From the NCBI GenBank assembly GCA_002269645.1, contig NIVC01001403.1:62001-126000 (forward strand): a DNA stretch of 64,000 nucleotides, given 5' to 3'. Positions within the stretch are counted from its first letter, which is position 1. Every line of letters begins with the position of its first letter. Both the position numbers and the translations under genes were made by a program. The DNA is from Macrostomum lignano (lineage: Eukaryota). The notes beneath the pieces are model-generated. The model saw only the letters and a program-made list of their open reading frames with translations. It made no database searches and was not told the DNA's origin. Below, piece after piece: positions 21,901-47,269 of this stretch.

Positions 21901-23909
21901 TCCGGGAGGGTAAGGAGTGTCCGGGAGTTAAGGAGAGTCCAGGAGGGTAAAGAGTGTCCGGGAGGGTAAGGAGAGTCCGGGAGGGTAAGAAGAGTGTCCG
22001 GGGGTAAGGAGTGTCCGGGGGGTAAAGAGTGTCCGGGGGGTAAGGAGTGTCCGGCGGGTAAGGAGTGTCAGGGGGGTAAGGAGTGTCCGGGGGGTAAGGA
22101 GTATCCGGGAGGGTAAGGAGAGTGTCCGGGAGGGTAAGGAGAGTGTCCGGGAGGATAAGGAGTGTTGGGGGAAGGTATAAGTAGAGTCTGGGGAGGATAA
22201 ACAGTGTGTCTTATTGAGAGTAGAGTTTATGGTTAGAATACATGATACATGAGAGAGCGGGCACTGCACAGGAATAGAAATCGATGGCCCCAGAGACGCG
22301 AATTGACCTTACCTGAACTCATTAGTGGCGGCAAAGGACTCAGGATCGGTGAGCGAGAACACGCATAGGAAGCCCTCTCCGCCGCGGAAATAATTGTCCC
22401 GAATGCTGGCATAGTCCTCCTGGCCAGCCGTGTCCAGGATGTCAATGTGCACCTCGGTGCCCTCCAGGGTGACCTTCTTTCGATACATATCGGCTTTGGT
22501 TGGCTCGTAGTCTTCAACGAACTGGGCGCGGTTGAGACGGAGTTTGACAGAAATTAGCCTAACTATTCGTACATATAGCAATGCATGATGCTCAAGTAGT
22601 GCCACAAGTGCATGAGTAACTACCCTAAAAGTATCAGATTGTATGACAGCATGCAGATTGATTAGCAGGAGTGATCTTCTAAAGAGTGGGTAGAGTGACT
22701 AGGAGAGTGGGTAGAGTGACTAGGAGAGTGGGTAGAGTGACTAGGAGAGTGGGTAGAGTGACTAGGAGAGTGGGTAGAGTCCCTAGGAGAGTGGGTAGAG
22801 TCTATAGGAGAGTGAGTAGAGTGACTATGAGAGTGGGTAGAGTGACTAGGAGAGTGGGTAGAGTGACTAGGAGAGTGGGTAGAGTGACTAGGAGAGTGGG
22901 TAGAGTCTATAGGAGAGTGAGTAGAGTGACTATGAGAGTGGGTAGAGTGACTAGGAGAGTGGGTAGAGTGACTAGGAGAGTGGGTAGAGTGACTAGGAGA
23001 GTGGGTAGAGTGACTAGGAGAGTGGGTAGCTTCTAGAGCGTGGGTAGAGTGACTAGGAGAGTGGGTAGCTTCTAGAGAGTATAGAGTGACTAGGAGAGTG
23101 GGTAGCTTTTAGAGAGTGGGTAGAGTGACTAGGAGAGTGGGTAGAGTGACTAGGAGAGTGGGTAGCTTCTAGAGCGTGGGTAGAGTGACTAGGAGAGTGG
23201 GTAGCTTCTAGGAGAGTGGGTAGAGTGACTAGGAGAGTGGGTAGCTTCTAGAGCGTGGGTAGAGTGACTAGGAGAGTGGGTAGCTTCTAGAGAGTGGGTA
23301 GAGTGACTAGGAGAGTGGGTAGCTTCTAGAGCGTGGGTAGAGTGACTAGGAGAGTGGGTAGCTTCTAGAGAGTATAGAGTGACTAGGAGAGTGGGTAGCT
23401 TTTAGAGAGTGGGTAGAGTGACTAGGAGAGTGGGTAGAGTGACTAGGAGAGTGGGTAGCTTCTAGAGCGTGGGTAGAGTGACTAGGAGAGTGGGTAGCTT
23501 CTAGAGAGTGGGTAGAGTGACTTGGGGAGTGGGTCGAGTACTCGGGAGAGTGGGCAGAATTCCCGGGGGGATTGGGTAGAGTTCCCGGAAGAGTGAGTAG
23601 ATTGCCCGGGAATGGGTAGAGTGACTAGAAGAGTGGGTAGAGTGCCCTAGAAAATAAATATAGTGGCTAGTTATAAATAAGTAATCGACGAGAATTTAGG
23701 ACGAGATTACGGGGAGTCTGGAAGACAGCTAGAGCGGACAGTGATAATGTACATGCACAAAATTGCAACTTCAGCAGGACGACCGTAACGCTCACCTCGT
23801 CGTACATGAACTGCAGCGTAAGGGCGCTTTTACCAACGGCGCCGCTGCCAACCATAATGATTTTATGCACAGGCTGCGATGAGCTGGTCCCACTCTTCTG
23901 CTTGGACAT
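18996..23909 (-). CDS. RAL: Ras-like GTPase Ral, polybasic-tail isoform; exons 23909-23796, 22521-22313, 21663-21489, 19109-18996
   Basis: [35 protein letters not shown]; [17 protein letters not shown]; LVGNKSDL; [14 protein letters not shown]; tail [13 protein letters not shown] (CAAX). Phases 0,2,0 are consistent. Confidence 0.93.
19550..20220. repeat. 46-bp purine-rich minisatellite (GAGGGAAGGTAGAGGGAGGGGATAAGAGAGGGTAGAGGCAAGGGAT)
   Basis: 46-nt period (19681 and 19727). Confidence 0.95.
20403..20408 (-). terminator. Candidate AATAAA poly(A) signal for the alternative Ral terminal exon
   Basis: AATAAA on the minus strand about 119 nt after the TGA at 20527. Confidence 0.6.
20527..20658 (-). 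CDS. RAL: Alternative Ral terminal exon: [43 protein letters not shown]
   Basis: Phase-0 AAG|GCC acceptor in frame with exon 3. Starts AFF-L like helix 5 (paralogous to AFYDL in the distal exon) and ends in CAAX CSLL. It has its own AATAAA. Confidence 0.8.
   Translation of the reverse strand, partial: AFFGLIRSVLDHKRGRPQLNRQQSGMAALQGGGSSAKCCCSLL
20810..21440. repeat. 19-20-bp minisatellite drifting from GAGTGATGAGATTGTCTGG to GAGTGCGGAGACTGTCTGG, Ral intron 3
   Basis: Direct periodicity. Confidence 0.9.
21725..22165. repeat. 19-20-bp minisatellite (GGAGTGTCCGGGAGGGTAA), Ral intron 2
   Basis: Direct periodicity. Confidence 0.92.
22680..23650. repeat. 21-bp minisatellite (GGAGAGTGGGTAGAGTGACTA), Ral intron 1
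   Basis: Direct periodicity; source of the RVGRVTR artefact ORF. Confidence 0.93.
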
Positions 23910-24149: not shown

Positions 24150-25050
24150 CCCTATTAGAGTGGGTAGAGTTTCTATGAGTGGTAGAGTCCATGGGAGTGG
24201 GTAGAGTCCATAGGAGAGTGAGTAGAGTCCTTGGGAGCGTGGGTAGAGCCCCTAGGAGGGTGAGTAGAGTCCCTAGGAGAGTGGGTAGAGTCTATAGGAG
24301 GGTGAGTAGTCCCTAGGAGAGTGAGTAAAGTCCCTAGGAGAGTGGGTAGAGTCTATAGGAGAGTGAGTAGAGTCCCTAGGAGAGTGAGTAGAGTCCCTAG
24401 GAGAGTGAGTAGAGTCTATAGGAGAGTGAGTAGAGTCCCTAGGAGAGTGAGTAGAGTCCCTAGGAGAGTGGGTAGAGTCTATAGGAGGGTGAGTAGTCCC
24501 TAAGAGAGTGACTAGAGTCCCTAGGAGAGTGGGTAGAGTCTATAGGAGAGTGAGTAGAGTCCCTAGGAGAGTGAGTAGAGTCCCTAGGAGAGTGAGTAGA
24601 GTCCCTAGGAGAGTGAGTAGAGTCCCCAGGAGAGTGAGTAGAGTCCCTGGGAGAGTGAGTAGAGTCCCTAGGAGAGTGAGTAGAGTCCCTAGGAGAGTGA
24701 GTAGAGTCCCTAGGAGAGTGAGTAGAGTCCCTGGGAGAGTGAGTAGAGTCCCTGGGAGAGTGAGTAGAGTCCCTGGGAGAGTGAGTAGAGTCCCTAGGAG
24801 AGTGGGTAGAGTCCCTAGGAAGGTGAGTAGAGTCCCTAGGAGAGTGGGTAGAGTCCCTAGGAGAGTGAGTAGAGTCCCTAGGAGAGTGAGTAGAGTCCCT
24901 GGGAGAGTGAGTAGAGTCTCTGGGAGAGTGAGTAGAGTCCCTAGGAGGGTGAGTAGAGTCCCTAGGAGGGTGAGTAGAGTCCCTAGGAGGGTGAGTAGAG
25001 TCCCTAGGAGGGTGAGTAGAGTCCCTAGGAGTGTTTAGTCCCTAAGAGAG
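24150..25050. repeat. 21-bp minisatellite (GGAGAGTGAGTAGAGTCCCTA) upstream of Ral, related to the intron 1 array
   Basis: Direct periodicity; shares the GGAGAGTGRGTAGAGT core. Confidence 0.93.
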
Positions 25051-25519: not shown

Positions 25520-26716
25520 TCACTTCTTCTTGGCGGTGAGACCTGCGCCAGCGTTGAACTTGAAGAAGATAATATCCCCGTCCTGCACCACATACTCCCT
25601 GCCCTTCTGCTTGTATTTGCCTTTGGCTTTCACCTCGCTCTCCGAGCCACACTCTTTATAATCTTCGAAGCTCATAACCTCGGCCATGATGAAGCCATTC
25701 TCCATGTCGGAGTGAATCTTGCCGGCAGCCTGAGGTGCTTTAGTATTTAGCGGAATTGTCCAAGCTTTCACTTCGTCTTTGCCGGCGGTGAAAAAGTACT
25801 GCAGCTGCAGAGCCTTGTAGCCGGTTGAGATGATTTTGCCCAGAGCCGAGCTCACCCCGTGCTCCTTAGAGAACTCAGCCCTCTGCTCATCGGTCATGTC
25901 CGCCCATTTAAACTCCAGCTCAGCGGACAGCGGGATCACTGCGGCTCCCGGATCGTGCTGGTCAATCCACTCCTTGATCTTTGGCAACCATTTGTTCTTC
26001 TTCCGAATGAAGTCCTTCTCGCTCAGGTTAACCAGGTACACGATTGGCTTAGCGGTGATGAACAGGTGCTCGTTGAGCAAATCGATTTCTTTGTCATTCC
26101 ACTGCTCGAACCGAAGCGACCGTTTCTCTTCGACAACGATCCGGTGCACCTTCTGGAAGGCTTCGAAAAGCGCCGTTTTGGACTTGTCGCCGCCGCGGGT
26201 GACCACCTTCTCCAGCTTCTCAAACTCCTTCACAATGTAGGCCTCATCTTTCAGCCGGAGCTCCTCGGAGATGATTTCTAGATCGCGGATGGGATCTACT
26301 TCGCCTTCAATGTGGGTGACCTCCTGGCAGTCGAATGCGCGCACCATGTGGAACAGCGCGTCAACGCCGCGGATATTGCTAAGGAAAGCGTTGCCAAGAC
26401 CCTGGCCTTCGCTGGCGCCTTTAACTAGGCCTGCAATGTCCCAGACATTGAGATAGGCGGGCACCCTGCTGGCAGGCTTCCAGTGCTCGCACAGCCATTC
26501 CCACCTGTCGTCTGGCACAGCCACCCGGCTCTCGTGCGGATCAATAGTGCAAAATGGGAAATTCTCGGCCGGAGCCGAGCTCTTCGTCAGCACGTTGAAG
26601 AATGTACTTTTGCCAACGTTGGGCAGGCCGACAATGCCGATCTTGAGGTTGCTGCCCATCCGGCCAATGATTGGCGGGTTTTTCGGCTCATCTGCTCCCT
26701 TCTTCTTTGGCGGCAT
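25520..26716 (-). CDS. OLA1: Obg-like ATPase 1 (YchF family), 398 aa, single coding exon
   Basis: [15 protein letters not shown]; [11 protein letters not shown]; [24 protein letters not shown]; NLSE G4 motif; TGS domain [12 protein letters not shown]...[12 protein letters not shown]. Confidence 0.97.
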
Positions 26717-26929: not shown

Positions 26930-27480
26930 CCAGCAACTGAGGATCTGGGAGGCTGGCCCAGCAACTGAGAATCTGAGAGGCTGGCACAGCAACTGAGAAT
27001 CTGGGAGGCTGGCACAGCAACTGACACTCTAGGAGGCTGGCCCAACAACTGGGGATCTGGGAGGCTGGCCCAGCATGTAAAGATCTGGGAGGCTGGCCCA
27101 GCATGTAAAGATCTGGGAGGCTGGCCCAGCATGTAAAGATCTGGGAGGCTGGCCCAGCATGTAAAGATCTGGGAGGCTGGCCCAGCATGTAAAGATCTGG
27201 GAGGCTGGCCCAGCATGTAAAGATCTGGGAGGCTGGCCCAGCATGTAAAGATCTGGGAGGCTGGTCCAGCAACTGAGGATCTGGGAGGCTGGCCCAGAAA
27301 CTGAGGATCTGGGAGGCTGGCCTAGCAACTGACACTCTGGGAGGCTGGCCCAGCAACTGGGGATCTGGGAGGCTGGCCCAGCAACTAAGAATCTGGCCCA
27401 GCAACTGACACTCTGGGAGGCTGGCCCAGCAACTGGGAATCTGGCCCAGCAACTGAGGGGATCTGGGAGGCTGGCGGATT
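26930..27480. repeat. 28-bp minisatellite family A (CTGAGGATCTGGGAGGCTGGCCCAGCAA, with a central CATGTAAAG variant block)
   Basis: Direct periodicity. Confidence 0.92.
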
Positions 27481-28096: not shown

Positions 28097-31000
28097 TCAG
28101 GACCAATCTTCATCCGACAGCCAGTTCAATTGGATGGCGTCCTGGCACAGGCTTGGCGGGTAGGTTTGGTATTGCAGCTCGCTTGATGGGTCCGCGTCTG
28201 CCAACGATCAATACTAATGAGCTAATAGCATGTCGCCTGGATGACACCATCCTGTTTCCTGTCTGCACCTGCTGCTTCCTGTCTGACACCATCCTGTTTC
28301 TTGTCTGCACCTTCTGCTTCCTGTCTGACACCATCCTGTTTCCTGTCTGCACCTTCTGCTTCCTGTCTGTCACCTGCTGTTTCCTGTCTGTCACCTGCTG
28401 TTTCCTGTCTGCCACCTGCTGTATCCTGTCTGCCTCCTGCTGTATCCTGTCTGCCTCCTGCTGTATCCTGTCTGTCACCTGCTGTTTCCCGTCTGCCACC
28501 TGCTGCTTCCTGTCTGTCACCTGCTGTTTCCTGTCTGTCACCTGCTGTTTCCTGTCTGTCACCTGCTGTTTCCTGTCTGTCACCTGCTGTTTCCTGTCTG
28601 TCACCTGCTGTTTCCTGTCTGTCACCTGCTGTTTCCTGTCTGTCACCTGCTGTTTCCTGTCTGCCAGCTGCTGTTTCCTGTCTGCCTCCTGCTGTTCTGT
28701 CTTCCACTTGCTGTTTCCTGTCTACCATTATGCTTTTTCCTGTCTGCCACCTGCTGTTTCCTGTCTGTCACCTGCTATTTCCTGTCTACCATTATGCTGT
28801 TTCCTGTCTGCCAGCTGCTGTTTCCTGTCTGCCTCCTGCTGTTCTGTCTTCCACTTGCTGTTTCCTGTCTACCATTATGCTTTTTCCTGTCTGCCACCTG
28901 CTGTTTCCTGTCTGTCACCTGCTGTTTCCTGTCTACCATTATGCTGTTTCCTGTCTGCCAGCTGCTGTTTCCTGTCTGCCATTATGCTGTTTCCTGTCTG
29001 TCACCTGCTGTTTCCTGTCTACCATTATGCTGTTCCCTGTCTGCCACCTGCTGTTCCCTGTCTGCCACCTGCTGTTTCCTGTCTGCCTCCTGTAGTTTCC
29101 AATACATTCTAATTTTACGACTATCCTGATCCAACTGTTTCCACAGTGTAAATATACTTCAGGCAAATCATTACCGTCAGAGTAGAACGGCACCGAGGTC
29201 GACTTGAAATTGCCGCCGCCGCCGCCGCCGTCGTCGTACCTGGCCAGCAGCTGGCCGACTGTCGCCGTCTCGCAGCCGAACTCCGCCAGCCGGTGCCGCA
29301 GCTCGCCGCCAGCCTCAGCCTCGCCGCTGCAATCGTCCGGCACAAGCAGAAGAAATTCGCGGTGCCGACAGCGCAGGCGGGTCTGCAATTCGGCGAGGCC
29401 GTCAACGCAGCCGAGCAGCCCGGCGCCGCCGGAGCCGCCTTCGCCAGGCAGCAGCGAGTCGACGGCCCAGCGGCTGGCCTCCAGCATCTCCAGACAGGCG
29501 GCCAGGCGCTGCCGCTCCGATTTGGCTTTCAACGAAGCGGCCGCGGATGCCCCGGCGGCTTCAGTCGCGGCATCTCGCAAACGGCGAAGGTCGCGAGCTC
29601 GAATCCCGATTGGCCAGCGGCTGTCGCGGCGGCCTGCGGCGGCTAACAGGCGGGTCAGGGTGTCCGGCTGGTAGCGCAGCGGGTCGCCAAGCAGCAGGCA
29701 GGGACCGCCGGTGACGGGGAAAATTGGTTGGAGAGATGAGGCCAGCGATGAGGCTGAGCTGGAGGCTGGGGAAGTGGGAATAAACAATATGGATGTGGCA
29801 ATCATAAATGTGTTCATTATAGCTTAGTCTGAACTGGGAAGCTGGGAGGCTGGCCCAGCAACTGGGGATCTGGGAGGCTGGCCCAGCTACTGAGGATCTG
29901 GGAGGCTGGCCCAGCAACTGAGGATCTGGGAGGCTGGCCCAGCAACTGAGGATCTGGGAGGCTGGCCCAGCAACTGAGGATCTGGGAGGCTGGCCCAGCA
30001 ACTGAGGGGAGCTGAGAGGCTGGCCCAGCAACTGAGGATCTGGGAGGCTGGCCCAGCAACTGAGGGGAGCTGAGAGGCTGGCCCAGCAACTGAGGATCTG
30101 GGAGGCTGGCACAGCAACTGACACTCTGGGAGGCTGGCCTAGCAACTGACACTCTGGGAGGCTGGCCCAGCAACTGAGGGGAGCTGAGAGGCTGGCCCAG
30201 CAACTGAGGATCTGGGAGGCAGGCCCAGCAACTGACGCTTTGGGAGGCTGACCCTGAAATCGAAGATCTGGGAGGCTGGCCCAGCAACTGAGGATCTGGG
30301 AGGCTGGCCCAGCAACTGACACGCTGGGAGGCTGGCCCAGCAACTGAGGATCTGGGAGGCTGACCCTGAAACTGAGGATCTGGGAGGCTGGCCTAGCAAC
30401 TAAGGATCAGGGAGGCTGGCCCAGCAACTGAGGATCAGGGAGGCTGGCCTAGCAACTAAGGATCAGGGAGGCTGGCCCAGCAACTGAGGATCTGGGAGGC
30501 TGGCCCAGCAACTGAGGATCAGGGAGGCTGGCCTAGCTACTGAGGATCCCTATGAGCAGTCTCACCCGTAGCAGCGCAGGCAGCCGCCGCAGCCGCCCTG
30601 GCCTGCTCAAAAGCCAGAAATCGAACGTCGCGCCGTTTCCGAAGCTCCAGCAGGCCGGGCAGCTGCCAGGGCAACCTGTCCAGAGCGGAGGCGTGGGCGT
30701 ACACCACGAGCTGCTGCTGCTGCTGCTGCTGCAGTTGCTGAATGCCATCCCGTCGGGGTCCACGGCACTGCAGCAGCAGGGAGGCGTGCAGCGGATCGCA
30801 CTGCCGATGTCCGAGGCTGGTCAGGCGGCTGGCCAGATCTGCGCACTCCGCACTGTCCGAGATGCCGACCACGTGGAAGAATGGCGGCGGTGGAGGAGGA
30901 GGCGGAGGCGGCGGCGGCACAATGGACTGCTGCTGTGGCTGCAGTAGCGCAGATAGCAGAGGAGTAGGATAGTACTAATTAGATGACGAGACATTTAGCC

Positions 31001-34000
31001 TTAATAATACAGTCATAGTTACTCCTGCTGTTTACCACAAAACTGCGTTAATTTTTGCTGAGGTTTCTTTTATAGGTAGGTCGCATTTTTGGTAAAAAAA
31101 AGTAAGTTTAAGTTCCATAGTTTCTGTAATCCATATCTCATTAGTAGTATTAAATAATTTTATAATTTTTGGGATTCTCGTGAGTTCACTTGAAAGGTCA
31201 AGGGTTCGATTCCTGATTCTACTCGAGAGTTCACCCAGCTGTAAAATGGGTAACCAGCATTAGCTGGGGTAACTGAGGGTGTGAGTGGCGAACCCCCCAG
31301 TCCTTGGACTGAACAGCCGTACGCAGCCTTCAGATGCGACGATGCGCCACGCAATAGCTGCGGCTGAGCTGTAGGTTGCACATATGGCCCAATTGGGGCA
31401 GGTTTATCAATTATTAATATTATTATTTTGGACAGTCTTGGCCCAGCGGCTAGCAACTGACACTCTTCGAGGCTGGCCCAGCAACTGAGGATCTGGGAGG
31501 CTGACCCTGAAACTGAGGATCTGGGAGGCTGACCCTGAAACTGAGGATCTGGGAGGCTGACCCTGAAACTGAGGATCTGGGAGGCTGACCCTGAAACTGA
31601 GGATCTGGGAGGCTGGCTTAGCAACTAAGGATCAGGGAGGCTGGCTCAGCAACTGAGGATCAGGGAGGCTGGCCTAGCAACTAAGGATCAGGGAGGCTGG
31701 CCCAGCAATTGAGGATCAGGGAGGCTGGCCTAGTAACTAAGGATCAGGGAGGCTTAAATTTAAAATTCAAGACTGCTTATTAATTGTCAAACTTGAATAA
31801 TCCGGATTCTGCATTCTGCAACTATTGTGGTTCAGAAAAAGACTCAGCAGTGTTAAGGGTAGGGCAGAGAATTTATTGACTAGAAAAAAGGGTCAGACAT
31901 ACCGCATGGCTGTAATAGGCGGCAAGGAAGCTGTGATCGATCGAGCCGGCTTGCCTAGCAACGGTTGCTAGGGCGGCGGACGCCCGCTGCTGCTGCTGCT
32001 GCTTAGCGACGGCCAGAGCGGCCAGCAGTCTGGTTTGCATCTGAGCGGACAGAGGCGGCGGCTGCTGCGGCTGAGACGGTGGCGCCTCATCGTCAAGGAA
32101 AGCATCGGCCAGGCCAATCTTGTAGCTGCGGATCATCGCGTCCTGGCGTTCCCGATAGGTCAGCGCGGAGCCGCCCGCGGCCGGCTCAGCAGCGGCAGGC
32201 GGCGGCGGTGGCTGCTGCCGGGGCATTGCGAGCTGGGAATTATTGTGATGGAGATGAGGCGGTTCAGGCGACGGCCGGAGCCTGGGCGGCAAGCAGCCTG
32301 CGGCAGGGGGGTAAGGAGATTGAAGCAGCTGGGAGCGTTGCGTGGGCACTGAAGGGCTTGCTAATCTAAGGGATAGAAATGAACTAACATGGATACATGT
32401 GGGCAGGTTATTAGGAAGACGCTGCTTATAGTAGTATTCGGGATTTCAGAACGCAAGTCTTCGTATAGGGGGTATTAAGAGATTTTTACTTAAAGTACCT
32501 TTACGACTTTCGGTATTTACGTTGGGAGATTTTCGGAATCAGCTGTATTGCGGGGTTTTATGAATCAGCTGAATTGGGAGATTTTGGGAATTAGCTGAAT
32601 TGGGAGATTTTGGGAATCAGCTGAATTGGGAAATTTTGGGAATTAGCTGAATTCGGACTTTAGGAATTAGCTGAATTGGGGGACTTTGGGAATTAGCTGA
32701 ATTGGGGGATTTTAGGTATGAGCTGAATTGGGAAATTTTTGGAAGCAGCTAAAGTGGGAGATTTTGGGAAATTGTGTGAATTTGGGATATTTCGGGAATT
32801 AGCTTAATTGGGGGATTTTGGGAATTAGGTGAATTGCACGAGAGGGGGGGGTTCGGAATCAGCTGAATTATGAGATTTAGGAACAGTTGAGTTGGGAGAT
32901 TTTGAGAATCAGCTAAATAAGGTTTTTCCTTTCAAAATGAGTTAGTTTTTTAAATCAGAGCTGTGCCAACTCAGAACTCACACTTCTGCTGAGCAATGCT
33001 TCCAGCAGCGGCAGATTCGAAAAGAATATCGCTGGGCCACTGCAAACTGGGCGCCGGCGACAAAGGTCGACGCAGAACTTGCCGTTGACAGGCGGTCATC
33101 GTCCAGTCGGACAGACCCTTCGACAGACACCGGCTGGCCGAGAACCGCCTCGGTGGCAGTGGCGGCAGGGCTCCAATCGACGCCGCTGTCAAATTCGGCA
33201 AACAGCCGTCAGCGGCTCTTAGAAACCGGCGTGCAGTCGAGCGCAGTCGATGCCACAGTCGACGAATTCGCCGACGAACAATCGAGCCAGACTTGGCGGC
33301 GCCGTCAATCCCAGCGTCAACATCGTCGACTACATCGAACTTGTCAAAGCCGATGCTCACAGGACTGCCGACATTGCCGCCACCGCTGCCGCTGTTATCA
33401 TCGCCGTCAAAATCGTCGTCGTCGCTTGTCAAAGACGCGGCCGCCGTCAGAGAGTCTGGATAGAGTTGGTTGATCGCCAACTGCTCGTTGCTAAGGACGC
33501 CACCGCCGCCCGCGTAGAAACCGTCCAGGTAGCGCAGTAGAGCGAAGCCGACGTTGCGAACGCTTCTTGAGCGACGCTTGGGGTCTGCGGTAAGGTCCGG
33601 AAATGTGAACTGCCAGACTAGTGAAACATGGACTGCCAGACTAGTGAAACATGGATTGCAAGACTAGTGAAACATGGATTGCCAGACTAGTGAAACATGG
33701 ATTGCTAGACTAGGGAAATATGGATTATCAGACTAGTGAAATATGGATTGCTAGACTAGTGAAATATGGATTGCTAGACTAGGGAAATATGGATTGCTAG
33801 ACTAGGGAAATATGGATTGCTAGACTAGGGAAATATGGATTGCTAGACTAGGGAAATATGGATTGCTAGACTAGGGAAATATGGATTGCTAGACTAGGGA
33901 AATATGGATTGCTAGACTAGGGAAATATGGATTGCTAGACTAGGGAAATATGGATTGCTAGACTAGGGAAATATGGATTGCTAGACTAGGGAAATATGGA

Positions 34001-37000
34001 TTGCTAGACTAGGGAAATATGGATTGCTAGACTAGGGAAATATGGATTGCTAGACTAGGGAAATATGGATTGCTAGACTAGGGAAATATGGATTGCTAGA
34101 CTAAGGAAACATGGATTGCTAGACTAAGGAAACATGGATTGCTAGACTAGGGAAATATGGATTGCTAGACTAGGGAAATATGGATTGCTAGACTAGGGAA
34201 ATATGGATTGCTAGACTAGGGAAATATGGATTGCTAGACTAGGGAAATATGGATTGCTAGACTAGGGAAATATGGATTGCTAGACTAGGGAAATATGGAT
34301 TGCTAGACTAGGGAAATATGGATTGCTAGACTAGGGAAATATGGATTGCTAGACTAGGGAAATATGGATTGCTAGACTAGGGAAATATGGATTGCTAGAC
34401 TAGGGAAATATGGATTGCTAGACTAGGGAAATATGGATTGCTAGACTAAGGAAACATGGATTGCTAGACTAGGGAAATATGGATTGCTAGACTAGGGAAA
34501 TATGGATTGCTAGACTAGGGAAATATGGATTGCTAGACTAGGGAAATATGGATTGCTAGACTAGGGAAATATGGATTGCTAGACTAGGGAAATATGGATT
34601 GCTAGACTAGGGAAATATGGATTGCTAGACTAGGGAAATATGGATTGCTAGACTAGGGAAATATGGATTGCTAGACTAGGGAAATATGGATTGCTAGACT
34701 AGGGAAATATGGATTGCTAGACTAGGGAAATATGGATTGCTAGACTAGGGAAATATGGATTGCTAGACTAGGGAAATATGGATTGCTAGACTAGGGAAAT
34801 ATGGATTGCTAGACTAGGGAAATATGGATTGCTAGACTAGGGAAATATGGATTGCTAGACTAGGGAAATATGGATTGCTAGACTAGGGAAATATGGATTG
34901 CTAGACTAAGGAAACATGGATTGCTAGACTAAGGAAACATGGATTGCTAGACTAGGGAAATATGGATTGCTAGACTAGGGAAATATGGATTGCTAGACTA
35001 GGGAAATATGGATTGCTAGACTAGGGAAATATGGATTGCTAGACTAGGGAAATATGGATTGCTAGACTAGGGAAATATGGATTGCTAGACTAGGGAAATA
35101 TGGATTGCTAGACTAGGGAAATATGGATTGCTAGACTAGGGAAATATGGATTGCTAGACTAGGGAAATATGGATTGCTAGACTAGGGAAATATGGATTGC
35201 TAGACTAGGGAAATATGGATTGCTAGACTAGGGAAATATGGATTGCTAGACTAGGGAAATATGGATTGCTAGACTAGGGAAATATGGATTGCTAGACTAG
35301 GGAAATATGGATTGCTAGACTAGGGAAATATGGATTGCTAGACTAGGGAAATATGGATTGCTAGACTAGGGAAATATGGATTGCTAGACTAGGGAAATAT
35401 GGATTGCTAGACTAGGGAAATATGGATTGCTAGACTAGGGAAATATGGATTGCTAGACTAGGGAAATATGGATTGCTAGACTAAGGAAACATGGATTGCT
35501 AGACTAGGGAAATATGGATTGCTAGACTAGGGAAATATGGATTGCTAGACTAGGGAAATATGGATTGCTAGACTAGGGAAATATGGATTGCTAGACTAGG
35601 GAAATATGGATTGCTAGACTAGGGAAATATGGATTGCTAGACTAAGGAAACATGGATTGCTAGACTAGGGAAATATGGATTGCTAGACTAGGGAAATATG
35701 GATTGCTAGACTAGGGAAATATGGATTGCTAGACTAGGGAAATATGGATTGCTAGACTAAGGAAACATGGATTGCTAGACTAGGGAAATATGGATTGCTA
35801 GACTAGGGAAATATGGATTGCTAGACTAGGGAAATATGGATTGCTAGACTAGGGAAATATGGATTGCTAGACTAAGGAAACATGGATTGCTAGACTAGGG
35901 AAATATGAATTGCTAGACTAGGGAAATATGGATTGCTAGACTAGGGAAATATGGATTGCTAGACTAGGGAAATATGGATTGCTAGACTAGGGAAATATGG
36001 ATTGCTAGACTAGGGAAATATGGATTGCTAGACTAGGGAAATATGGATTGCTAGACTAGGGAAATATGGATTGCTAGACTAGGGAAATATGGATTGCTAG
36101 ACTAGGGAAATATGGATTGCTAGACTAAGGAAACATGGATTGCTAGACTAGGGAAATATGGATTCCTAGACTAGGGAAATATGGATTGCTAGACTAGGGA
36201 AATATGGATTGCTAGACTAGGGAAATATGGATTGCTAGACTAGGGAAATATGGATTGCTAGACTAGGGAAATATGGATTGCTAGACTAGGGAAATATGGA
36301 TTGCTAGACTATTCAAACGACTATCAAAAGCTCGCCATACCGCTGCTATCCAACGTGCCCCGCTCCATCAGCCACTCGGTCAGGGCTGCCTGAGCGGTGC
36401 GGCCGAGTTGACGCCGCAGGTGTAGCGGCAGCGACTCCTCCAACAGGGCGGCGTTGGCCCGTCGTGTTAGTCGAGACGCCGCATCCACTGGCAGACGGCG
36501 AAGACGTCGACGTGGGGGAAAATGGCGAGACTGCTGAGAAGGCTGCGACTGGGATTCAGCTGGAATGGTGAGGTCAGCGTGGGTGAAAATTAAAGTGCAG
36601 ATGCAGCAGCCGATTGACAATCCAACTATCAGAGTAGAGTGACAATCTGACTACAGAGTGACAATCTGACTATCAGAGTGACAATTTGACTATCAGAGTG
36701 ACAATTCGACTATGAGAGTGACAATCTGACTATCAGAGTGACAATTTGACTATGAGAGTGACAATTTGACTATCAGAGTGACAATTTGACTATCAGTGAC
36801 AATCTGACTATCAGAGTGACAATTCGACTATGAGAGTGACAATCTGACTATCAGAGTGACAATCTGACTATGAGAGTGACAATTCGACTATGAGAGTGAC
36901 ATCTGACTATCAGAGTGACAATTTGACTGTCAGAGTGACAATCTGACTATCAGAGTGACAATCTGACTATGAGAGTGACAATTTGACTATCAGAGTGACA

Positions 37001-38576
37001 ATCTGACTATCAGAGTGACAATTCGACTATCAGAGTGACAATCTGACTATCAGAGTGACAATCTGACTATCAGGACTAAAATCTGGTGAGTTTTAACTTC
37101 AATAGTATACACCTGGCGCATACCTGAGCAGTCGGCAGTGGACTGAGTATTATCCCGCAAAATGACGGCCAGATTCTGTTTAAAATCTGCCAGCGCCAAT
37201 TCAGCCTGGGATCTGTCACCGGAATCGGAAGCGATAGCAGCGCGACCCGAGCCGGCGGATTGGGCCAGGCCACGGCCAAGACGGCGAACTTCTGACACCA
37301 GACTGGGCGACTTGGCGAGGCAGGTGGACAGCAGGTTGTCTGAAGAGGGTTAGGGTGATGCTGCAGATAAGCTTTCATGTGAGCAGTGAGGATCTGGGAG
37401 TGCGGCAGGTGCTCAGCAACTGAGGATCTGGGAGTGCGGCAGGTGGCCCAGCAACTGAGGATCTGGGAGTGCGGCAGGTGGCCCAGCAACTGAGGATCTG
37501 GGAGTGCGGCAGGTGGCCCAGCAACTGAGGATCTGGGAGTGCGGCAGGTGGCCCAGCAACTGAGGATCTGGGAGGAATAAAAGTACTCAAAGTAGGCCAC
37601 TCACCAACAGACGCAGGTAAGTCGATGCTGTCATCATCGGAGCCGCTGCTCACTTGAGCCTCCAAGTTGCACGCAGCGGTGAAGCGGGCGTCAATGAAGC
37701 TCTGCAGTTGGCTCACCGCTGTAGTTGGCGAAATTTCTGCATTGTTGAAAAAATGAAAATAAAGCAGTTGCAGCACCATTGTGTAGGAGAATCCATCTTA
37801 GATAAGTAGGGACCTGAGCGGAGTGAACTATTGCTCACTCGGTAAATATAGGGACCTGAGCGGAGTGAACTATTGCTCACTCGGTAAATATAGGGACCTG
37901 AGCGGAGTGAACTATTGCTCACTCGGTAAATATAGGGACCTGAGCGGAGTGAACTATAGCTCATTCGGTAAATATAGGGACCTGAGCGGAGTGAACTATT
38001 GCTCACTCGGTAAAAATAGGGACCTGAGCGGAGTACTGGCATAAATAGAACAATGCATTAAAACTACATATATTGCACACCTGCATCTGTTCCATTGACT
38101 TCAGAAGCTTTATCAGCCGGTTTGCTGCTAGCAGATGCATTGGCAACAACAACAGCAGAAGCAGTATCAGAAGAGGCTGGCAAGCACCGCGTCAGAGCCA
38201 CCTGAGTCTCCGATAGCAGACAATCTGCCAAATCGTCAAGCGATGAATCTCCATTTCCAGCATCCTCATTGCTGGCATTGTTATTAAACTCCTCGGCGGC
38301 CTTGCAAACTTCATCAAGCTGCTTAGCTAGGCTAGCCAGATTCAGCTTAGCAATCTTGTCCACCGAGGCGCAAATGGCAGCTTCACTGGGCTGCCCATCG
38401 CTAGATGACGGTGCCAGTTTCCGCTTCCGGTTGCCATTTCCCGTCTGGCTGGAACTGCCATCCAGGCCAGATTGGGTCAGCCGGTTCAAAAAGTTGGACA
38501 CTTCATCGGCTGCTGTGGCCGAGGCTGCATCAACCTCGGGCATGTCCGGGCCATTGCCCAGCTTGGAGGTGAGCAT
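28097..38576 (-). CDS. About 1058-aa protein with a C-terminal region resembling the TASOR/FAM208 (HUSH) alpha-beta and PIN-like domains; exons 38576-38081, 37736-37605, 37339-37124, 36559-36341, 33584-32982, 32348-31903, 30938-30566, 29765-29175, 28197-28097
   Basis: Nine exons join through GT-AG junctions with fully consistent phases (1,1,1,1,1,0,1,1), totalling 3177 nt. C-terminal motifs: CADLASRLTSLGHRQCDP, LPGLLELRKRRDVRF, IFPVTGG, RWPIGIRARDLRRLRD, LLGCVDGLAELQ, LAEFGCETATVGQLL. The gene model is well supported; the family call is from recalled motifs and the start codon is uncertain. Confidence 0.65.
28240..29100. repeat. 21-bp minisatellite (CACCTGCTGTTTCCTGTCTGT), last intron of the TASOR-like gene
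   Basis: Direct periodicity; source of several artefactual ORFs. Confidence 0.93.
29840..30545. repeat. 28-bp minisatellite family A, second array
   Basis: Same unit and orientation as 26930-27480. Confidence 0.92.
31175..31430 (+). mobile_element. 5'-truncated tRNA-derived SINE with a CORE-like domain
   Basis: B-box GGTTCGATTCC at 31203-31213; CACCCAGCTGTAAAATGGGTA at 31232-31252 resembles the conserved CORE-SINE motif; (TAT)n-like tail at 31411-31429; no A-box seen. Confidence 0.55.
31440..31755. repeat. 28-bp minisatellite family A, third array (GACCCTGAAA variant)
   Basis: Same GAGGATCWGGGAGGCTG core. Confidence 0.9.
32530..32930. repeat. Degenerate ~25-bp repeat (GGGAATTAGCTGAATTGGGAGATTT)
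   Basis: Diverged copies visible. Confidence 0.8.
33612..36310. repeat. 23-bp minisatellite (TAGACTAGGGAAATATGGATTGC), about 117 near-identical copies
   Basis: Direct periodicity; it fills nearly the whole intron 33585-36340. Confidence 0.97.
36625..37075. repeat. 20-bp minisatellite (GAGTGACAATYTGACTATCA)
   Basis: Direct periodicity. Confidence 0.93.
37385..37575. repeat. 35-bp derivative of family A (CTGAGGATCTGGGAGTGCGGCAGGTGGCCCAGCAA), about 5 copies
   Basis: Family A unit with a 7-bp internal expansion. Confidence 0.88.
37805..38035. repeat. 42-bp minisatellite (GGGACCTGAGCGGAGTGAACTATTGCTCACTCGGTAAATATA), about 5.5 copies
   Basis: Direct periodicity; internal GAGTGA...TCACTC stem. 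Confidence 0.92.
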
Positions 38577-39529
38577 GTGACAGCTGCTGCTGTTTGACTC
38601 TCGAGTTGCAGGTGAAAGTTTTAATAAATTGATTGACTTGGCACTGGGAGAGCAAAAGTTGCAGCATAAATGCAGCAGCAAGTAATTCAATACAATTGTG
38701 AAAATATACAACCCTTTAGATTCAATTTAGCAGCTATAAGGAGGAAACTGTCAGAGTCAGATGCAGATAAACATTGATTTTAAGTATTTCTTTATTGCAG
38801 AATTTTCTACAGCTTCTATAATACTTTATGAAGATAGGAAATTTTAAAAAGCAATTTAGTGCTAAGTGATACCTGATTTTGAAGAGGCTTAGTGTGTATA
38901 GATTTCTATTAAATATACCTAGACTATTGTGATAATATCTTTAAGATTTGTGCCATTTAAATAAATGCCAATTCATCAAATTAACACTATCAAAATTTTG
39001 GCTTTCTAAAAAATTAGGCTGCAACAAAAGTTTTGAGCATTTTTGAGCATTTTGAGCACCCTATCCATAGCCCATAGTCCAGATCATGGCAGGCGTAGGC
39101 TGGAATGAAAATTCATGTTTTTTAAATTTTATGCTGACATAAAATAAAAAATTTTTCACACCAAGACTAAAATTGTTTATATGCCATTTTTTCAAAGCAT
39201 ATATATTTTTAGGAATTCAAAACTTTTATTTAACTTTAAAATGGCTGTTTTTTTTGCTAAAAACTGAATATTGTTTGTTTTAATTTGGCCTTTCTTATAA
39301 TTTTACATTATTATTTTCAATTTTAGTTTCCAATTATTTTTAAAGAGCTTTCAATGTTGGTTGATATTTAACTACACAATTACACTAGCCTTGAACTTGG
39401 CTATTTTTGTATGCCGACTGTGTACACTTCATGTCAAACCTGAAAATTCTATATGCCAAGTGTATGCCAAGATTGTCAGCGAGACCAAAAATATGCCGGA
39501 AAATTCTGGCGAAAAGGCCACCTTCGAAT

Positions 39530-40640
39530 GAGTATAACTTTGGCTGTCAACTTTTCTATCAACTATTCCATTAACTTTCTGTCAACTATTCCATTAACTT
39601 TTCCATCAACTATTCCATTAACTTTCTATCAACTATTCCATTAACTTTTTCATCAACTATTCCATTAACTTTTCTATTAACTATTCCATTAACTTTCTGT
39701 CAACTATTCCATTAAATTTTCCATCAACTTTTATGTCAACTGTTTCATGAACAATTATGCAAGTCTGTTAACTAGATTCCATCAAATTTTCTGTGTACTC
39801 TGAATGGAAAGTGATATTTTTCTGTATAAATGCAGACTTTTCCTTTGCAATTTTTTATGCATGCTTAAATTGGTTGAGTATTTATGTATATGTATAAATT
39901 ATAAATAAATAACACACATGCAATTTTTTTTGTGTGAATTTAAATGGTATTGCTGCACTATTTGCACTATATCTGCACTTGTTTTATCGATTCATCTTTG
40001 GTAACTAGGGTAAATGGAAAAGATGCACGTTTTTACTAATGTAGGCTTGTTTTTTCATTGATATATAAGCATACAAACAGTCAATAAATGAGCAAAGAGC
40101 TACTTGCATGATGATCCTATTTGACAAAGTCACATGTTTCTCCAAACATTAAATTGCACTTTAATGAATGCATTTAAAGTGCAACACTATACTTTTTTTA
40201 ATTAAATACATAGGTCGCTAGAATTTTGCCTATCCCCTAAAAAATATTGAAAGAGTTCTAATCAAATTATTTTTGATTAATTAAAGTACAATAAACATGT
40301 CCTGCTAACAGTTAACTACATATGCTCACACAAGGACTTCTAGATTTACTAGACCAACTAGTTAGTCTAGAAGTCCTTGTGCTCACAATTTACAAATAAA
40401 AATAACATTAATGTATGAGCTTGGATGTCATACAGAATTATTTCATAAAAGTTGATGGATAAAGTTGAAGGAAAAGTTGACAGAAAAGTTAATAGAGAAG
40501 TTTATAGAAAAGTTGATGGAAGAGCTAACAGAAAAGTTGACAGATAAAGTTGTGTACCCAACTTATAGGAAAAGTTGATGGAAAAGTTAACAGAAAAGTT
40601 AATGGAAAAGCTGAAAGAAAAGTTGATGGCCAAAGTTATA
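39530..40640. mobile_element. Foldback/MITE-like element with repetitive inverted arms (39530-39760 and 40440-40640)
   Basis: GAGTATAACTTTGGCTGTCAACTTTT versus AAAAGTTGATGGCCAAAGTTATA; the TCAACTATTCCATTAACTTT repeats are mirrored by AAAAGTTGATGGAAAAGTT repeats. Confidence 0.6.
40330..40380. mobile_element. 51-bp hairpin insertion with perfect 15-bp TIRs (ACAAGGACTTCTAGA) and a GCTCAC flanking duplication
   Basis: GCTCAC at 40324-40329 and 40381-40386 flanks an exact inverted repeat. Confidence 0.6.
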
Positions 40641-42432
40641 TTTGTACCTTCCTGACTATGTCCCATACCACAGGGCCTAGTCCAGATCATGCTGGGTGCA
40701 TGCCTGAACAAAAATTGAATAATTACAAATGCACACCAGAAAAAATGTAGTGCATGCCCATTCTAAAAAATATGCCAGTGTTGCAACAATAAATGACCTT
40801 TTTTACGTTGTGACAATAAAATACTTTTTTTTAAATTAGGCCTACATAATAAACCCCTATTACCAAATAATTTGGTTGCTTTTTATGCTTTTTTGGCAAT
40901 ACTATTTATAGCAGAAAATTTAAACACTCAAAGATTTGTTTAAATACCCTTTTAAGAGCTTGAAAAAACTAGAAAGCTTGAAATTTGCACTTAAAAATGA
41001 ACTTTTTCATCTTTTTTCTACTTCACAATAACTTTTACACATGATTCTATAAAGTTCACACTAGGTGTGCACGCACACTATCTTCTCAGGAGTGATGCAC
41101 ATTGCACGCCAACTGTGCACGCCTAATTTTGGCATGCAAGGCCAATGCACACCCAAATTTTTGGGCATAGGCCTATACTATATGATCCAGTCCAGAGTGT
41201 GGGTCCCATCCCATAGCCATAGGCATAGGGTCTTACTTTAAGGGATATAGACTAGAAAAAACTTTTTAAAATATATTTAGATATTAGTATTTAATAAAAT
41301 CTTGTCTTAAAAGTTTTTAAAACTACAAAAACTTTTAGGCCTATGTTTATACCAACAAAAAACCCAATGTAGGCTTTATATTTGACAAGTCATACCTCAT
41401 AGGACCCCCACCCCACTAAAGTCCCTATGCCAGGTAACAAAAATCATGACATGATGCCAATTGATGGTCATGCTGATGCCTATGAGGACTAAAAAGTGGT
41501 TTGGCAAAAAATTAAAGATTCAGACCTAAAGATTTTAAAGACCTAGACCTAGGCCTAGTCAAAGCAAAGAAACTAGTATAGGTCTAGTTCAATTTAATGC
41601 ACTGGATATTTATGTAATTAAAAGGAAGTTGTTTGATTGGCGATTACACTAGGCCTACTGACTAGGTTAGCCTAACATGTTAGACGAAGTGTTTAACTTC
41701 GTTGAAAAATGAAACTCTCCATAACCATAACTAGAGGGAGATACGTGCTATAAAGTTTTTATTATTGAATGACAATCGCCAAGAAGAAAGTGAAAAATTG
41801 TGCTAAGTTAGGTTGTTAAGGCAGTCAAATATTAACAGAGTTTAATATTTATACTGCTGTTTTTCTTGGAATTCCGAACCGATTCTGGTTCTGGAATTGG
41901 TAATGTGAAAAGGCCCATTGAGAGATTCCGCGCGCTCTTTATTAAGTAGTAAGAGAATTTGGCTCAGGCAATTAGCCTGTTTGGCCAATATATTATAGAG
42001 CTATGTATTTGGAATTTTCGAATATAGAAGTTTATAAAGACGATTTGACGACGATTTGCTGAGTTATTGTAAAAGATAAAGTATTTGAAAGCGCGCCAGA
42101 ATTTTTACGGTATTTTTAGACGAAAAGTGACGACTAACAACTAACGAGTATAAATATTAATACAAAAATGAGTACAAATTACGAGGTATAGCTTTAATTG
42201 CGAGATTACTTTGGTAAGCGAGTTTGTAAAAAAAAAAGATGTAGTATTTTTGAAAGCGCGTGATATTTCAAAGCGTGAAAAACGAACATAAACAATACTT
42301 CGAAAGAATTTTACTTTTAACGAATAACGACGATTTAAATATAGGAAATTAAAAAAGACAGTAAATGAATAAACAACTGAAAAGCGGATTTGTTACACTG
42401 CTGATGTATCTGATTCAGTTTGTTTAACTGTT

Positions 42433-42867
42433 TTAGCTATTCATGACTTCATATATTTTAGCTACACCAGTGAGCTCTTTTCTGACTCTTTTTTCATTTG
42501 TAGCATATCCTATCTTGTGTATTTGATTGCTATTTAAGAGGTATTGACAGAAGTATTTTTTCCTGATCTCTTCAGTTTGTGGACATTCGGTCAAGTAGTG
42601 TAGAATGTCAGAACCATTTCGCGCTCCACACATTTTACATGGTTCTTGAGAAAAAAAGTTGGGTGTAATCTCGCATTTCAGTTTTAGGAGGGTTGTTAAG
42701 AATTTTTTGTTTCTAAATGTACATGGAAAGAAATCTGAAAGGTCGGGCCTGCAGATTTTTTTGTAGAGATAGGCGTTTTTGTAGAGTTTAATATGTTGCT
42801 GATTCTCTAGCTTTTGGCTAAGTTCTCTTTCTCTGTGTATCTTGAGGTGCTTTTTCCAAAGCATCAT
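42433..42867 (-). mobile_element. 3' fragment of a non-LTR retrotransposon ORF2 (post-RT CCHC domain)
   Basis: IKLYKN...LTTLLKLK...CKMC-x9-H-x4-C-PQTEEIRKKYF matches the LINE C-terminal zinc-knuckle pattern; no RT is visible upstream. Confidence 0.6.
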
Positions 42868-44499
42868 TTTCCCAAAGCTTTAATAACGAGAAATACCTAG
42901 TGAAAAAGACCTGGCGAAAATGATGTTTTTAAATTGCTTCATGATGACTCACTCGTTATTTCACGATGTTTTTTATAATATATTATAAATGCACTTTTCA
43001 TTACAATTTTGCACTTCAAAAGTCTATGCTCTTACCTTTTAGTATTGCAATGGCCGCCCTAACTTTATAACTTAAGAGGAATCAATCTTCATTCGTCCAA
43101 ATAAACTGCATACCAGTTTAATATAGTATTCGTTTCTTCTTGAAGCCAAAATCTTATTTAGAGCCTACATTATATTTTAATTGCAGATACGTAAAGACTA
43201 AAGATTATGTATATTTATGTTATTTTCTAGTAATCGTGCATACATGTTTATCGGCCAATCGTCCTAAAGAGCCTAAAAATAACTATAAAAATTAGGTTAC
43301 TTACTTTCTTATGTATTTATAATTTATCATTTTGCAAGAGCTGCACCTGATATTAAAAAACGTATTCATTCACGCATTTACATGTAGCTACTCCAAAAAA
43401 GCACATTCTGACAATTGCATTCGGAAAGATTCGCGTATACCGAAACCTATACATTTAAATTTTTAATTAAGATCACAGTTTAGTTGACTTAATTAGTTAT
43501 ATAATAAAGCAGGGGATATATACATGTACGTAACAACTGAGGCAGGTTCGCATTATCGCTACACCTTGCATGTACAAGCGTACATGTACGAGTAGCAGCG
43601 TAAGTCATAAAAAAGATTTATAGATCGAGTTTGTCCCAACAACCACCGTGTGAGACAGCAGAATTGTACATTGGTTGCCCAATAATTGCATAAATTTTCT
43701 CCCGGTGAAATGCTGGCACTTGATTATTGCATACGTATGCATACATCTTTGCTAAGTTATTTTAATGTGCGTTCATCAAAAATTAAATTTATTCATCACC
43801 CATATTGACCCAATAAAGATTTTCTAGTGGTAGTGATAAAATCGAAACTTTGCTAGCTGAAGCCTATAGTGTCGTATACAACCAAAGTATAAGTTCTAGT
43901 TAAACACATAGGTTGTAATAAAAATTTCAAGGTAGAACAGTTGAAAAATACTGAAAAATTTTTGAGATAAAACGATTAATTTTTTAAGAAGTTATATTAG
44001 TTTGTTTAAACTGAATAAGAAAGTTTAAAATACCAACTGATTTCCTGGAACAGCCCGCGCTGGGAACGGTCGAACGAAGTGTCAGTGTCAGCAAATGCTG
44101 AAAATGCTGATTGCATCGGCAGCACTTTTGCACTTTAGCTACCTAAGGATTATTGATACTTGAAAATGAATTGATAAAAGAATTTACTAATTTAAGAAAT
44201 GTATATTGTTTTATACATTTTTTAGTTTAAAATGTATTAAATTGCTTCTTACAATTTTATTTCTAATAGAAATTTTCTATGCTATGTCACGTATCTGACT
44301 GATGTTCCGATGGAATGGTATCAATAAAACATTGTCATTAATTGGCCTGGTTGGCTCTCTTATATTACCTCATCTTAGATCCTATCTTATTTCACTTAAA
44401 ACTAAAAGCGCTATACTTGTCAAACTATTTCCAATTGCCAATTAGATTGATTTAAAAATGCAATATAATAGAAATCAGGTAAAGTAGCTTGCTTGGCAA

Positions 44500-45620
44500 A
44501 TAAAATAAAAAGAAATCCAAAAATCAACATGTGGTTTTTTTCACACACCAAGGTGCATTGTCAGGTATATTGTTTGAGACAAAAGGTGTGAGTAAGCAAA
44601 TTTATAAATTATTTGTCAATGAAACGTATGTTAGTATGTAGCTGGTGAGTAAGTATTTTGTTTATTATATAGCTTTGTATTTTGTTTCATAGCTGGTGAG
44701 TCACCCACCCTTAATACGCAACTCCAACACAATGGTTCAGGCCATGTTTTTTGATTCCAGGTATTCTGAGTGAGAGAGCATTGACCTTGTTGTAACCACT
44801 GCTAACTCAATTATATTTTGTTTTCTACCTATTGGACATAGTCAGGAAGGTGTCCAGTGTATGCAGGAACTAATTCTGGGCAAAATTTAGCCTGTACACC
44901 AATGTACGCCAATTTTTTTAGCTTCATTTCGAACATTACGCTGTACACTGAGTCTGAAGTCCTTTTTCCATATTTGAAATTGGATTTTACGAAAGAATGG
45001 ACTACTTTATTGCATGCAACAATTTAAAAAAAGTTGAAAACAGAAACAAATAAAACAATTCTTTTTTCACAAAAGTGCAAAATAACAATCTTTAGAAATA
45101 GTTTTCCATTATCTGCTTATTTTTTATTATTCTTTAATTTTTTCAATGGCCATAAATCAACAAAGACATATGATACAATGCAAATAAGATTGAATATTAT
45201 TTGTAAAAAAGGTCACTGTGCAATTGCTTATGTATACAGACAGTGATTATGATGCTGCCAGTAAAATTGGTACACCGATTTTGTCGTTCTGTTGTGTGTG
45301 TACACAGATACGCAAGTTTTCTAAAGATCTGTATGCTGAAACTGATTCTAACGGCCAAGTGTACGCGGGATTATTCCTGCGTACGGACACCTTCCTGACT
45401 ATGGCCTATTGGTCTTTGCCTTGCCTTGCCATATGGACTATTAACCTCCTACTACTCTGTACATACAAAATACTTACTCACTAGCTACATACATTTCATT
45501 GACAAATAATTTATAAATTCGCTTACTCACACCTTCTGTTTCAAACAATATAACTAACAATGCACCTTGCTATGCAAAGAAAAAAACTACATGTTGATTT
45601 TGGGATTTATTTTCATTTTA
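44500..45620. mobile_element. About 1.1-kb foldback element with long imperfect inverted arms
   Basis: 44500-44665 is the reverse complement of 45466-45620; the inner arms 44831-44880 and 45371-45410 also pair. Confidence 0.75.
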
Positions 45621-45628
45621 ATAGAAGT

Positions 45629-46032: not shown

Positions 46033-46238
46033 GTTTTTTATATTTGACTTTTATAAAAGTCATATATTGTAAGGCCTAATTATATATAGTAGTTGTTATA
46101 TTATTATAGTTACCATATAAATAGCAAAATTTACTTTTAGGGTCAACGCATAAGATACATCTGGGCCTAGGGTCTTTATTTAATATAACTAGGTGTTAAA
46201 CAATATTGAATTTATCAAGATTTTTTACTTCAAGATTT

Positions 46239-47024: not shown

Positions 47025-47269
47025 ATTTTATATTTTTTCAACAATACAATATGAGATTTGATCAAGATTTTAAGATATATAATTCAAAGGCCTAATTCAA
47101 ATTAGACAAAGCTAAAAAACTGAAACTAGGCCTACCCGTATAACTTTAGTTAAAATCATAACCTTTAGTTCATAAAAAACATAGATTTTTTAGTTCATCA
47201 TTTTTCTTAATATGGCTTAATCCATTAATATGGATGACACTATAATAGGTTGATTTTTGGTATTAATTT

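Follow-up and report, generated by a model that had tools for sequence, protein, structure and literature searches.

Does a gene of the flatworm Macrostomum lignano end in the same module that closes the vertebrate protein TASOR? TASOR is a transposon-silencing protein of vertebrates and the scaffold of the HUSH complex, which is usually described as vertebrate-specific. The question is raised by a multi-exon gene on the minus strand (38576-28097) of a 64-kb window, the whole stretch of DNA that was analysed here, which was traced with 100% identity to contig NIVC01001403.1 of the M. lignano assembly Mlig_3_7 (GCA_002269645.1; contig coordinate = window position + 62,000). The original prediction had joined nine open reading frame (ORF) fragments into this gene and read the end of its product as TASOR-like. 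In the analysis that follows, a ~95-residue stretch encoded by exon 7 probably resembles the DomII domain of TASOR, in a coherent but sub-threshold manner, and the chance that this resemblance reflects true homology to TASOR DomII is put at roughly one half.

Pfam scans of the whole protein returned a single non-trivial match, to PF23314, the 'TASOR alpha/beta domain' (DomII), for which the curated gathering cut-off is 27 bits. Profile positions 6-82 of 95 were matched with every query, and the score varied with the trimming of the query, from E = 0.15 (12.6 bits) for the full model of 1040 amino acids (aa) through E = 0.016 (15.8 bits) for the 308-aa C-terminus to E = 0.001 (19.6 bits) for the 139-aa domain. 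The raw, unspliced ORF of exon 7 by itself gave E = 0.0011 (19.5 bits), and the match is therefore independent of the splicing model. As controls, the sequence was reversed, shuffled five times and read in its two other frames and from the opposite strand, none of which brought up PF23314; in all, sixteen native or synthetic decoys were free of this match. The matching stretch lies at 30603-30878 on the minus strand, within exon 7 (30566-30938, minus strand; donor /GTGAGA at 30566), and is interrupted between helix 1 and strand 2 by an insertion of poly-Q. The GC content of exon 7 at the first, second and third codon positions (GC1/2/3) is 0.79/0.52/0.74.

A human TASOR C-terminus served as search bait only; it retrieved the real sequence, 100% identical, which was used for the comparisons and as a control gave PF23314 at 6-100 and PF24630 at 104-245. 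The first two motifs named in the original prediction agree with it position for position: the first, given as C-x2-I-x3-L-x2-LG-x2-EC-x-P, is ECADLASRLTSLGHRQCDP in the flatworm and LCKEIKEYLIKLGNTECHP in TASOR, and the second, given as IPGLxxLKKxxxVxF, is QLPGLLELRKRRDVRF and KIPGLVTLKKLPCVSF, respectively, with six conserved positions in motif 1 and seven in motif 2 at the same spacing. Some ~90 residues of TASOR/TASOR2 DomII (PF23314; human TASOR ~1212-1330) are collinear with the flatworm stretch, and both share the order strand, helix (CxxLxxxLxxLGxxxCxP), strand, helix (LPGLxxL[RK]K) and strand (VxF). Unlike TASOR, the flatworm stretch carries insertions of 20 aa of poly-Q and 16 aa of poly-A/S; these Macrostomum-specific insertions are placed between predicted strands and helices. 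As in TASOR, a stretch of about PIN size, i.e. a further ~150-190 residues, comes after the domain, which is located close to the C-terminus. A semi-global BLOSUM62 alignment against human TASOR gave z = 5.0, and none of 1000 shuffles reached the real score; hhalign of the DomII-like stretch against TASOR gave P = 0.0016. A profile of 170 vertebrate TASOR fragments gave p = 0.0024, with a 34-residue ungapped match of QQLVVYAHASALDRLPWQLPGLLELRKRRDVRF to LDKLLIIIQNEDIAGFIHKIPGLVTLKKLPCVSF. The TASOR profile search had produced 269 matches, and all 120 listed were vertebrate exon fragments, with an effective number of sequences of ~3 and hence a narrow profile.

Several results weigh against homology, and they lend substance to a rival explanation, in which an orphan, fast-evolving, low-complexity flatworm protein resembles TASOR by chance through two short hydrophobic/Gly/Cys motifs that happen to align against a generic beta-alpha-beta background. 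All statistics are sub-threshold and derive from a single stretch of ~90 aa: even the best PF23314 score, at 19.6 bits, is under the gathering cut-off of 27, and trimming the query changes the E-value, which is only 0.15 for the full model. BLASTP against human TASOR gave only E = 0.097 at an identity of ~21%, and the hhalign probability for the DomII-like stretch was 1%. False matches of similar size (E = 0.005-0.014) fell on neighbouring segments, namely poly-Pro at E = 0.0047 and, in exon 4, a chance Pfam match to Arabinose_bd at E = 0.014, which serves as a gauge of the noise level. A phmmer search with the C-terminal 308 aa against 1.84 billion representative proteins found no relative outside M. 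lignano, and no TASOR either. The only database proteins that matched the region, in this search and in a word-indexed one, were A0A1I8HAZ4 and A0A1I8FQ82 from UniProt, both fragments from M. lignano, and so no alignment of natural homologues was possible; motif 1 lies outside the coverage of both of these models.

The stretch that follows adds to the points on this side. The original prediction had taken the ~190 aa after the DomII-like part for the PIN domain of TASOR, citing IFxxGG, a W-rich strand, LxxCx5LQ and a final helix, and this part failed every test. No match to PF24630 (PIN_TASOR) was obtained in the C-terminus at E ≤ 10, where the human control gave E = 3.3e-53; hhalign gave P = 0.68-0.86, the shuffle test gave z = 0.8, and Pfam scans of the model and the C-terminus contained no PIN family of any kind; nor was any alignment of this part reliable enough for placing the conserved acidic active-site residues of PIN nucleases. 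The MAFFT alignment of the part changed with the rows that were included, and many short fragments misaligned it. The first ~53 of these residues (29733-29575; LQPIFPVTGG...RWPIGIRARDLRRLR) showed marginal similarity, with p ~0.01 for a segment chosen post hoc. Rich in Ala, Arg and Leu, the ~190 aa may represent a PIN-like domain that has degenerated badly, or else no more than low-complexity sequence of helical character.

Structure prediction, which had been proposed as a check on the C-terminus, provided no confident fold. AlphaFold with the single sequence reached a predicted local distance difference test (pLDDT) score of 37, i.e. no usable model. Adding vertebrate TASOR rows to AlphaFold2 raised this to a still low 51.3, in a design that is circular and biased toward the hypothesis. 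In the resulting model the DomII part had a pLDDT of 50-66 and the order strand-helix-strand-helix-strand, while residues 108-218 came out all-helical at a pLDDT of 29-50, and the PIN part thus failed even with the biased design. The best Foldseek match in the PDB had E = 1.3, which is noise, and Chp1 of Schizosaccharomyces pombe did not appear. PDB sequence searches with the flatworm C-terminus, human TASOR and a joint profile found neither TASOR nor Chp1. The PDB does not hold the TASOR C-terminus, and Nikolopoulos et al. describe DomII/PIN as structurally unstudied (PMC7618375).

Taken with the missing TASOR domains described below, these results make a chance resemblance a strong contender, if one whose probability I place somewhat under even. 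What speaks against chance is that a library-wide E of 0.001 falls on the exact family which an independent motif reading had suggested, that 77 of the 95 profile positions are covered by non-repetitive sequence, that shuffles and decoys never reproduced the match, and that weak further similarity runs collinearly into the first PIN strand. The reading preferred here, at a probability just short of even, is that the protein is specific to its lineage and that its C-terminal module is remotely DomII-like and of a non-catalytic, interaction type.

This is less than the original prediction had proposed, namely a divergent invertebrate TASOR relative or HUSH scaffold. The sub-threshold DomII match speaks for that proposal, and it is overstated in view of the lack of a pseudo-PARP or SPOC domain and the doubtful link of the N-terminal ~700 aa to the module. 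That neither domain is recognisable had been noted from the outset, and this was borne out by Pfam scans of the model, the exons and 14 kb upstream. No match to the pseudo-PARP domain DUF3715 was found in the 1040-aa model (E ≤ 10), in single exons (E ≤ 1) or in minus-strand ORFs of at least 45 aa within 38577-53000 (E ≤ 1), and the same sets held no SPOC. DomI, the MPP8-binding domain, was likewise lacking in the Pfam scans of the gene and its upstream DNA, a result that is less certain since Pfam may hold no DomI model.

In its stronger form, the original reading would be a true TASOR orthologue and HUSH scaffold of which the pseudo-PARP, SPOC and DomI exons were missed; on its side are the DomII-like match and reports of invertebrate TASOR-like proteins made of DUF3715, SPOC and DomI (PMC10578480). 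This is highly improbable given the negative scans just described. The upstream stretch has a GC content of 25-36%, unlike the 54-70% of the gene's exons, and its far end is marked by an adducin-like gene on the opposite strand; in addition, the mean intron of M. lignano measures ~1.1-1.4 kb (PMC5730564). Further 5' exons upstream, which the original prediction had considered, also lack support in that the minus strand of 38577-53000 contains only junk ORFs with no Pfam match. The acceptor on which that suggestion hung does exist, as an AG at 38645-38644. It may be more simply read as a site for spliced-leader trans-splicing, which affects 38.8% of M. lignano genes (PMC5730564).

The flatworm protein is not a TASOR orthologue, because no pseudo-PARP or SPOC domain is detectable, and it has at most one domain in common with TASOR. 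Schopp et al. (2023) defined invertebrate TASOR-like proteins by DUF3715-SPOC-DomI and described the full architecture, including DomII/PIN, for vertebrates (PMC10578480), whereas the host here is a flatworm. Both those proteins and the flatworm protein have partial TASOR domain content, and their contents are complementary: the former have the N-terminal domains, and the latter has a candidate DomII without them. According to Douse et al. (2020), TASOR 1233-1466 resembles the DomII and PIN of Chp1 and is dispensable for reporter repression (PMC7532188). Chp1 of S. pombe belongs to the RITS complex (PDB 3TIX), and its likeness to the flatworm protein runs via TASOR only. The C-terminal DomII/PIN modules of TASOR and Chp1 are both non-catalytic and both belong to silencing scaffolds, while between Chp1 and the flatworm protein there was no direct PDB sequence or Foldseek match, and the latter has neither a chromodomain nor SPOC. 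That the flatworm carries a free-standing DomII module of the TASOR/Chp1 type, perhaps with a degenerate PIN, uncoupled from the pseudo-PARP/SPOC/DomI half, appears rather unlikely. No paper linking TASOR or HUSH to flatworms was found.

How much of the gene around the module can be trusted is a separate matter. The original prediction had joined its nine ORF fragments into one frame of 3177 nt with every phase matching. The open segments are real, and dynamic programming over GT-AG sites, with the ATG at 38576, the stop at 28099-28097 and the acceptor at 30938 fixed, yielded a stop-free path of 3177 nt, but it is not unique. Over a thousand different total lengths were reached by dynamic programming, and the best-site model of this analysis measures 3123 nt, or 1040 aa. 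Phase agreement carries little weight here, because in DNA of 55-70% GC all three frames are often open, and in GC-rich DNA with long open stretches such agreement is near the chance expectation. The 3177-nt path found here moreover attains its length only if exon 8 is run into a 21-bp satellite, as far as a donor at 29005, and it begins exon 5 at an acceptor (33609) within a 23-bp satellite, where the other candidate acceptor, at 33640, also lies.

Codon positions give a clearer signal. GC2 is the lowest, and GC3 is 0.64-0.78 in exons 5-8, like in the neighbouring OLA1 and adducin genes, which fits coding in the stated frames; in exon 1 the signal is weak (GC3 0.52). From outside, the junction of exons 7 and 8 (30566/29765) is reproduced exactly by A0A1I8HAZ4 (174 aa, 100% identity). 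A0A1I8FQ82 is frame-shift-ridden and comes from another copy or assembly, and it is collinear through exons 5-6-7-8; its sequence is a patchwork of all three reading frames. UniProt calls the two 'Adenylate kinase' and 'Nuclear receptor domain-containing protein', names for which neither their sequences nor Pfam scans offered any backing. When these two models were compared, exons 1-4 and the putative exon 9 found no outside support. The nine-exon model as a whole is thus not supported, the junction of exons 7 and 8 being its only one confirmed from outside.

The exons, all on the minus strand, vary accordingly in how well they are defined. Putative exon 1 (38081-38576) has an open frame from the ATG at 38576 (alternatively 38543) to the donor CAG/GTGTGC and encodes a run resembling a nuclear localisation signal (NLS), GNRKRKL. 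Putative exon 2 (37605-37736) has the acceptor TTTTCAACAATGCAG/ (alternatively one at 37796) and the donor /GTGAGT, with phase 1 kept. Putative exon 3 (37124-37339) combines a good acceptor and donor with a consistent phase and has an alternative donor at 37113, while in putative exon 4 (36355-36559) the frame is open but the donors are weak; its alternative acceptors are at 36625 and 36533 and its alternative donors at 36376 and 36489. Exon 5 (32982-33584), which reads ..VRNVGFALLRYLDGFY..DWTMTACQRQVL..QQK, ends at the donor AAGT/GTGAGT at 32982, has a GC3 of 0.64, is covered by A0A1I8FQ82, and contains no Pfam domain. Exon 8 (29240-29765) encodes the region first called PIN-like and has an uncertain 3' boundary: A0A1I8FQ82 reads through its donor at 29240, and the open frame closes only within the satellite, with a stop at 28941-28939. 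The putative exon 9 (28097-28151), encoding ..SLCQDAIQLNWLSDEDWS*, is based only on an AG and a fitting phase, and neither homology nor an outside model was found for it.

Exon 6 (31903-32297) is where the structure of the gene may divide. The nine-exon ORF needs the acceptor at 32297; with any of the competing acceptors (32232, 32214, 32211) translation would enter another frame and stop at the TGA at 32188-32186. The contig gene table lists a sole gene over the locus, known by range and length only, with a 593-aa product and a range ending at 32186, which is this TGA in a different frame inside exon 6, and exons 7-8 are covered by no gene in it. This endpoint of the product can be reached from the donor at 32982 via 32232, 32214 or 32211 and not via 32297, and several GT-AG paths of 593 aa fit the record. 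Since that product ends at 32186 in another frame inside exon 6, the TASOR-like part may be made separately from the low-complexity N-terminal ~700 aa.

In its explicit form this alternative comprises two products: an upstream disordered protein of ~593 aa, made of exons 1-5 plus a short terminal piece (32982 to 32232, stop at 32186), and a separate DomII-like protein of ~435 aa (MPRQQPPPP..) starting from the ATG at 32226-32224, which lies 6 nt past the acceptor at 32232 and opens the frame that continues into exons 7-8. The smaller protein would be made from a second ORF, as an alternative isoform, or from a trans-spliced downstream mRNA; polycistronic precursors and trans-splicing are both common in M. 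lignano (PMC5730564). The acceptor at 32232 is weaker than that at 32297 and truncates the ORF, an unlikely ab initio choice that hints at transcript evidence, and the GenBank annotation of Mlig_3_7 is transcriptome-based (PMC5730564). On the other side, the origin of the gene table is unconfirmed, the acceptor at 32297 has the better polypyrimidine tract, and A0A1I8FQ82 joins exons 5 to 8 and keeps PHLHHNNSQLA, which is encoded between 32297 and 32232. I regard two products as a real possibility, on the doubtful side. As it bears on gene structure, the alternative can be combined with homology as well as with chance resemblance.

The introns of the gene are crowded with satellites, as is the intergenic DNA of this gene-dense window. 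Intron 4 is filled by a very homogeneous array at 33599-36311 (118 copies of the 23-bp unit GGAAATATGGATTGCTAGACTAG, 97% identical and without indels). Intron 7 holds 25 copies of the 28-bp unit CTGGGAGGCTGGCCCAGCAACTGAGGAT at 29842-30548, a family that recurs in intron 6 (31469-31754) and downstream of the gene (27000-27475) and gives long 'LGQPPRSSVAGPASQILSCWASLPDPQL' pseudo-ORFs. A 35-bp array at 37387-37574, in a further intron, has pseudo-ORF motifs like those of the 28-bp family and may be related to it. The satellite at the 3' end of the gene (28252-29100) consists of 21-bp units with a higher-order period of 147 bp and is open in several frames on both strands, which generates spurious ORFs of 168-319 aa. 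More tandem arrays at 95-857, 8302-9075, 19360-20324, 20824-21508, 24508-25038 and 58676-63457 yield long repetitive pseudo-ORFs such as 'PHLSPDSHTSVPIPTPQSRF' and 'QCPFLQMRSPIRSS'. About 15% of the M. lignano genome consists of tandem repeats, and the arrays of the window fit that figure (PMC5730564).

On one side, the gene is flanked by an intronless gene for an OLA1/YchF-type GTPase (25520-26716, minus strand, 398 aa, with MMR_HSR1 and YchF-GTPase_C), 1.4 kb downstream, and on the other by the 14-kb AT-rich stretch that runs up to the adducin-like gene. The exons of the latter (53133-56083, plus strand) encode a Class II aldolase/adducin N-terminal domain (E = 1.7e-16). Within the AT-rich DNA, a 13-kb block at 39000-52000 has a GC content of 25-36% vs 45-60% elsewhere in the window, and its one sizeable ORF (42433-42867, 144 aa), with a Cys/His-rich tail and no Pfam match, may be a transposon remnant. 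Further away, the contig gene table lists a multi-exon small GTPase gene (Arf/Ras/Roc families; 18996-23909, minus strand) with a 203-aa product. Two further minus-strand segments, 2386-4256 and 10865-11293, contain aspartyl protease exons of eukaryotic type (PF00026, E = 2.6e-21) and the exon for the C-terminus of an actin or actin-related protein (PF00022, E = 6.7e-29).

The following picture would fit the preferred reading of a lineage-specific protein with a remote DomII-like module. The gene or transcription unit would be real but poorly defined, Macrostomum-specific, and with introns full of satellites. Its exons 7-8 would encode a C-terminal module whose first ~95 residues form an alpha/beta domain. 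This domain is probably remotely homologous to DomII of TASOR (PF23314), which is in turn related to DomII of the fission-yeast protein Chp1. The module would most likely be the non-catalytic interaction part that terminates a scaffold protein, one disordered over most of its length and possibly nuclear; the predicted protein contains basic NLS-like runs. Homology, nuclear location and scaffold role are drawn here by inference only, and a role of HUSH type or in transposon silencing is speculation.

With a single domain match below threshold behind it, the DomII-like module is at present a lead and not a finding. The narrower practical result is that the nine-exon model is doubtful and that the PIN claim and the two UniProt names are unsupported. 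DomII/PIN of TASOR is the one folded region of HUSH without a structure or known role (PMC7532188, PMC7618375), and if the flatworm match is genuine, a DomII detached from the rest of TASOR would show that the module is older than, and separable from, its vertebrate setting. Were it truly a free-standing module, the C-terminal part of the HUSH scaffold would be older than the vertebrates and able to circulate as a gene of its own, and it might serve HUSH- or RITS-like silencing in a genome of which more than half is repeats. M. lignano would then offer a transgenic animal, amenable to RNA interference, in which to ask what the module does.

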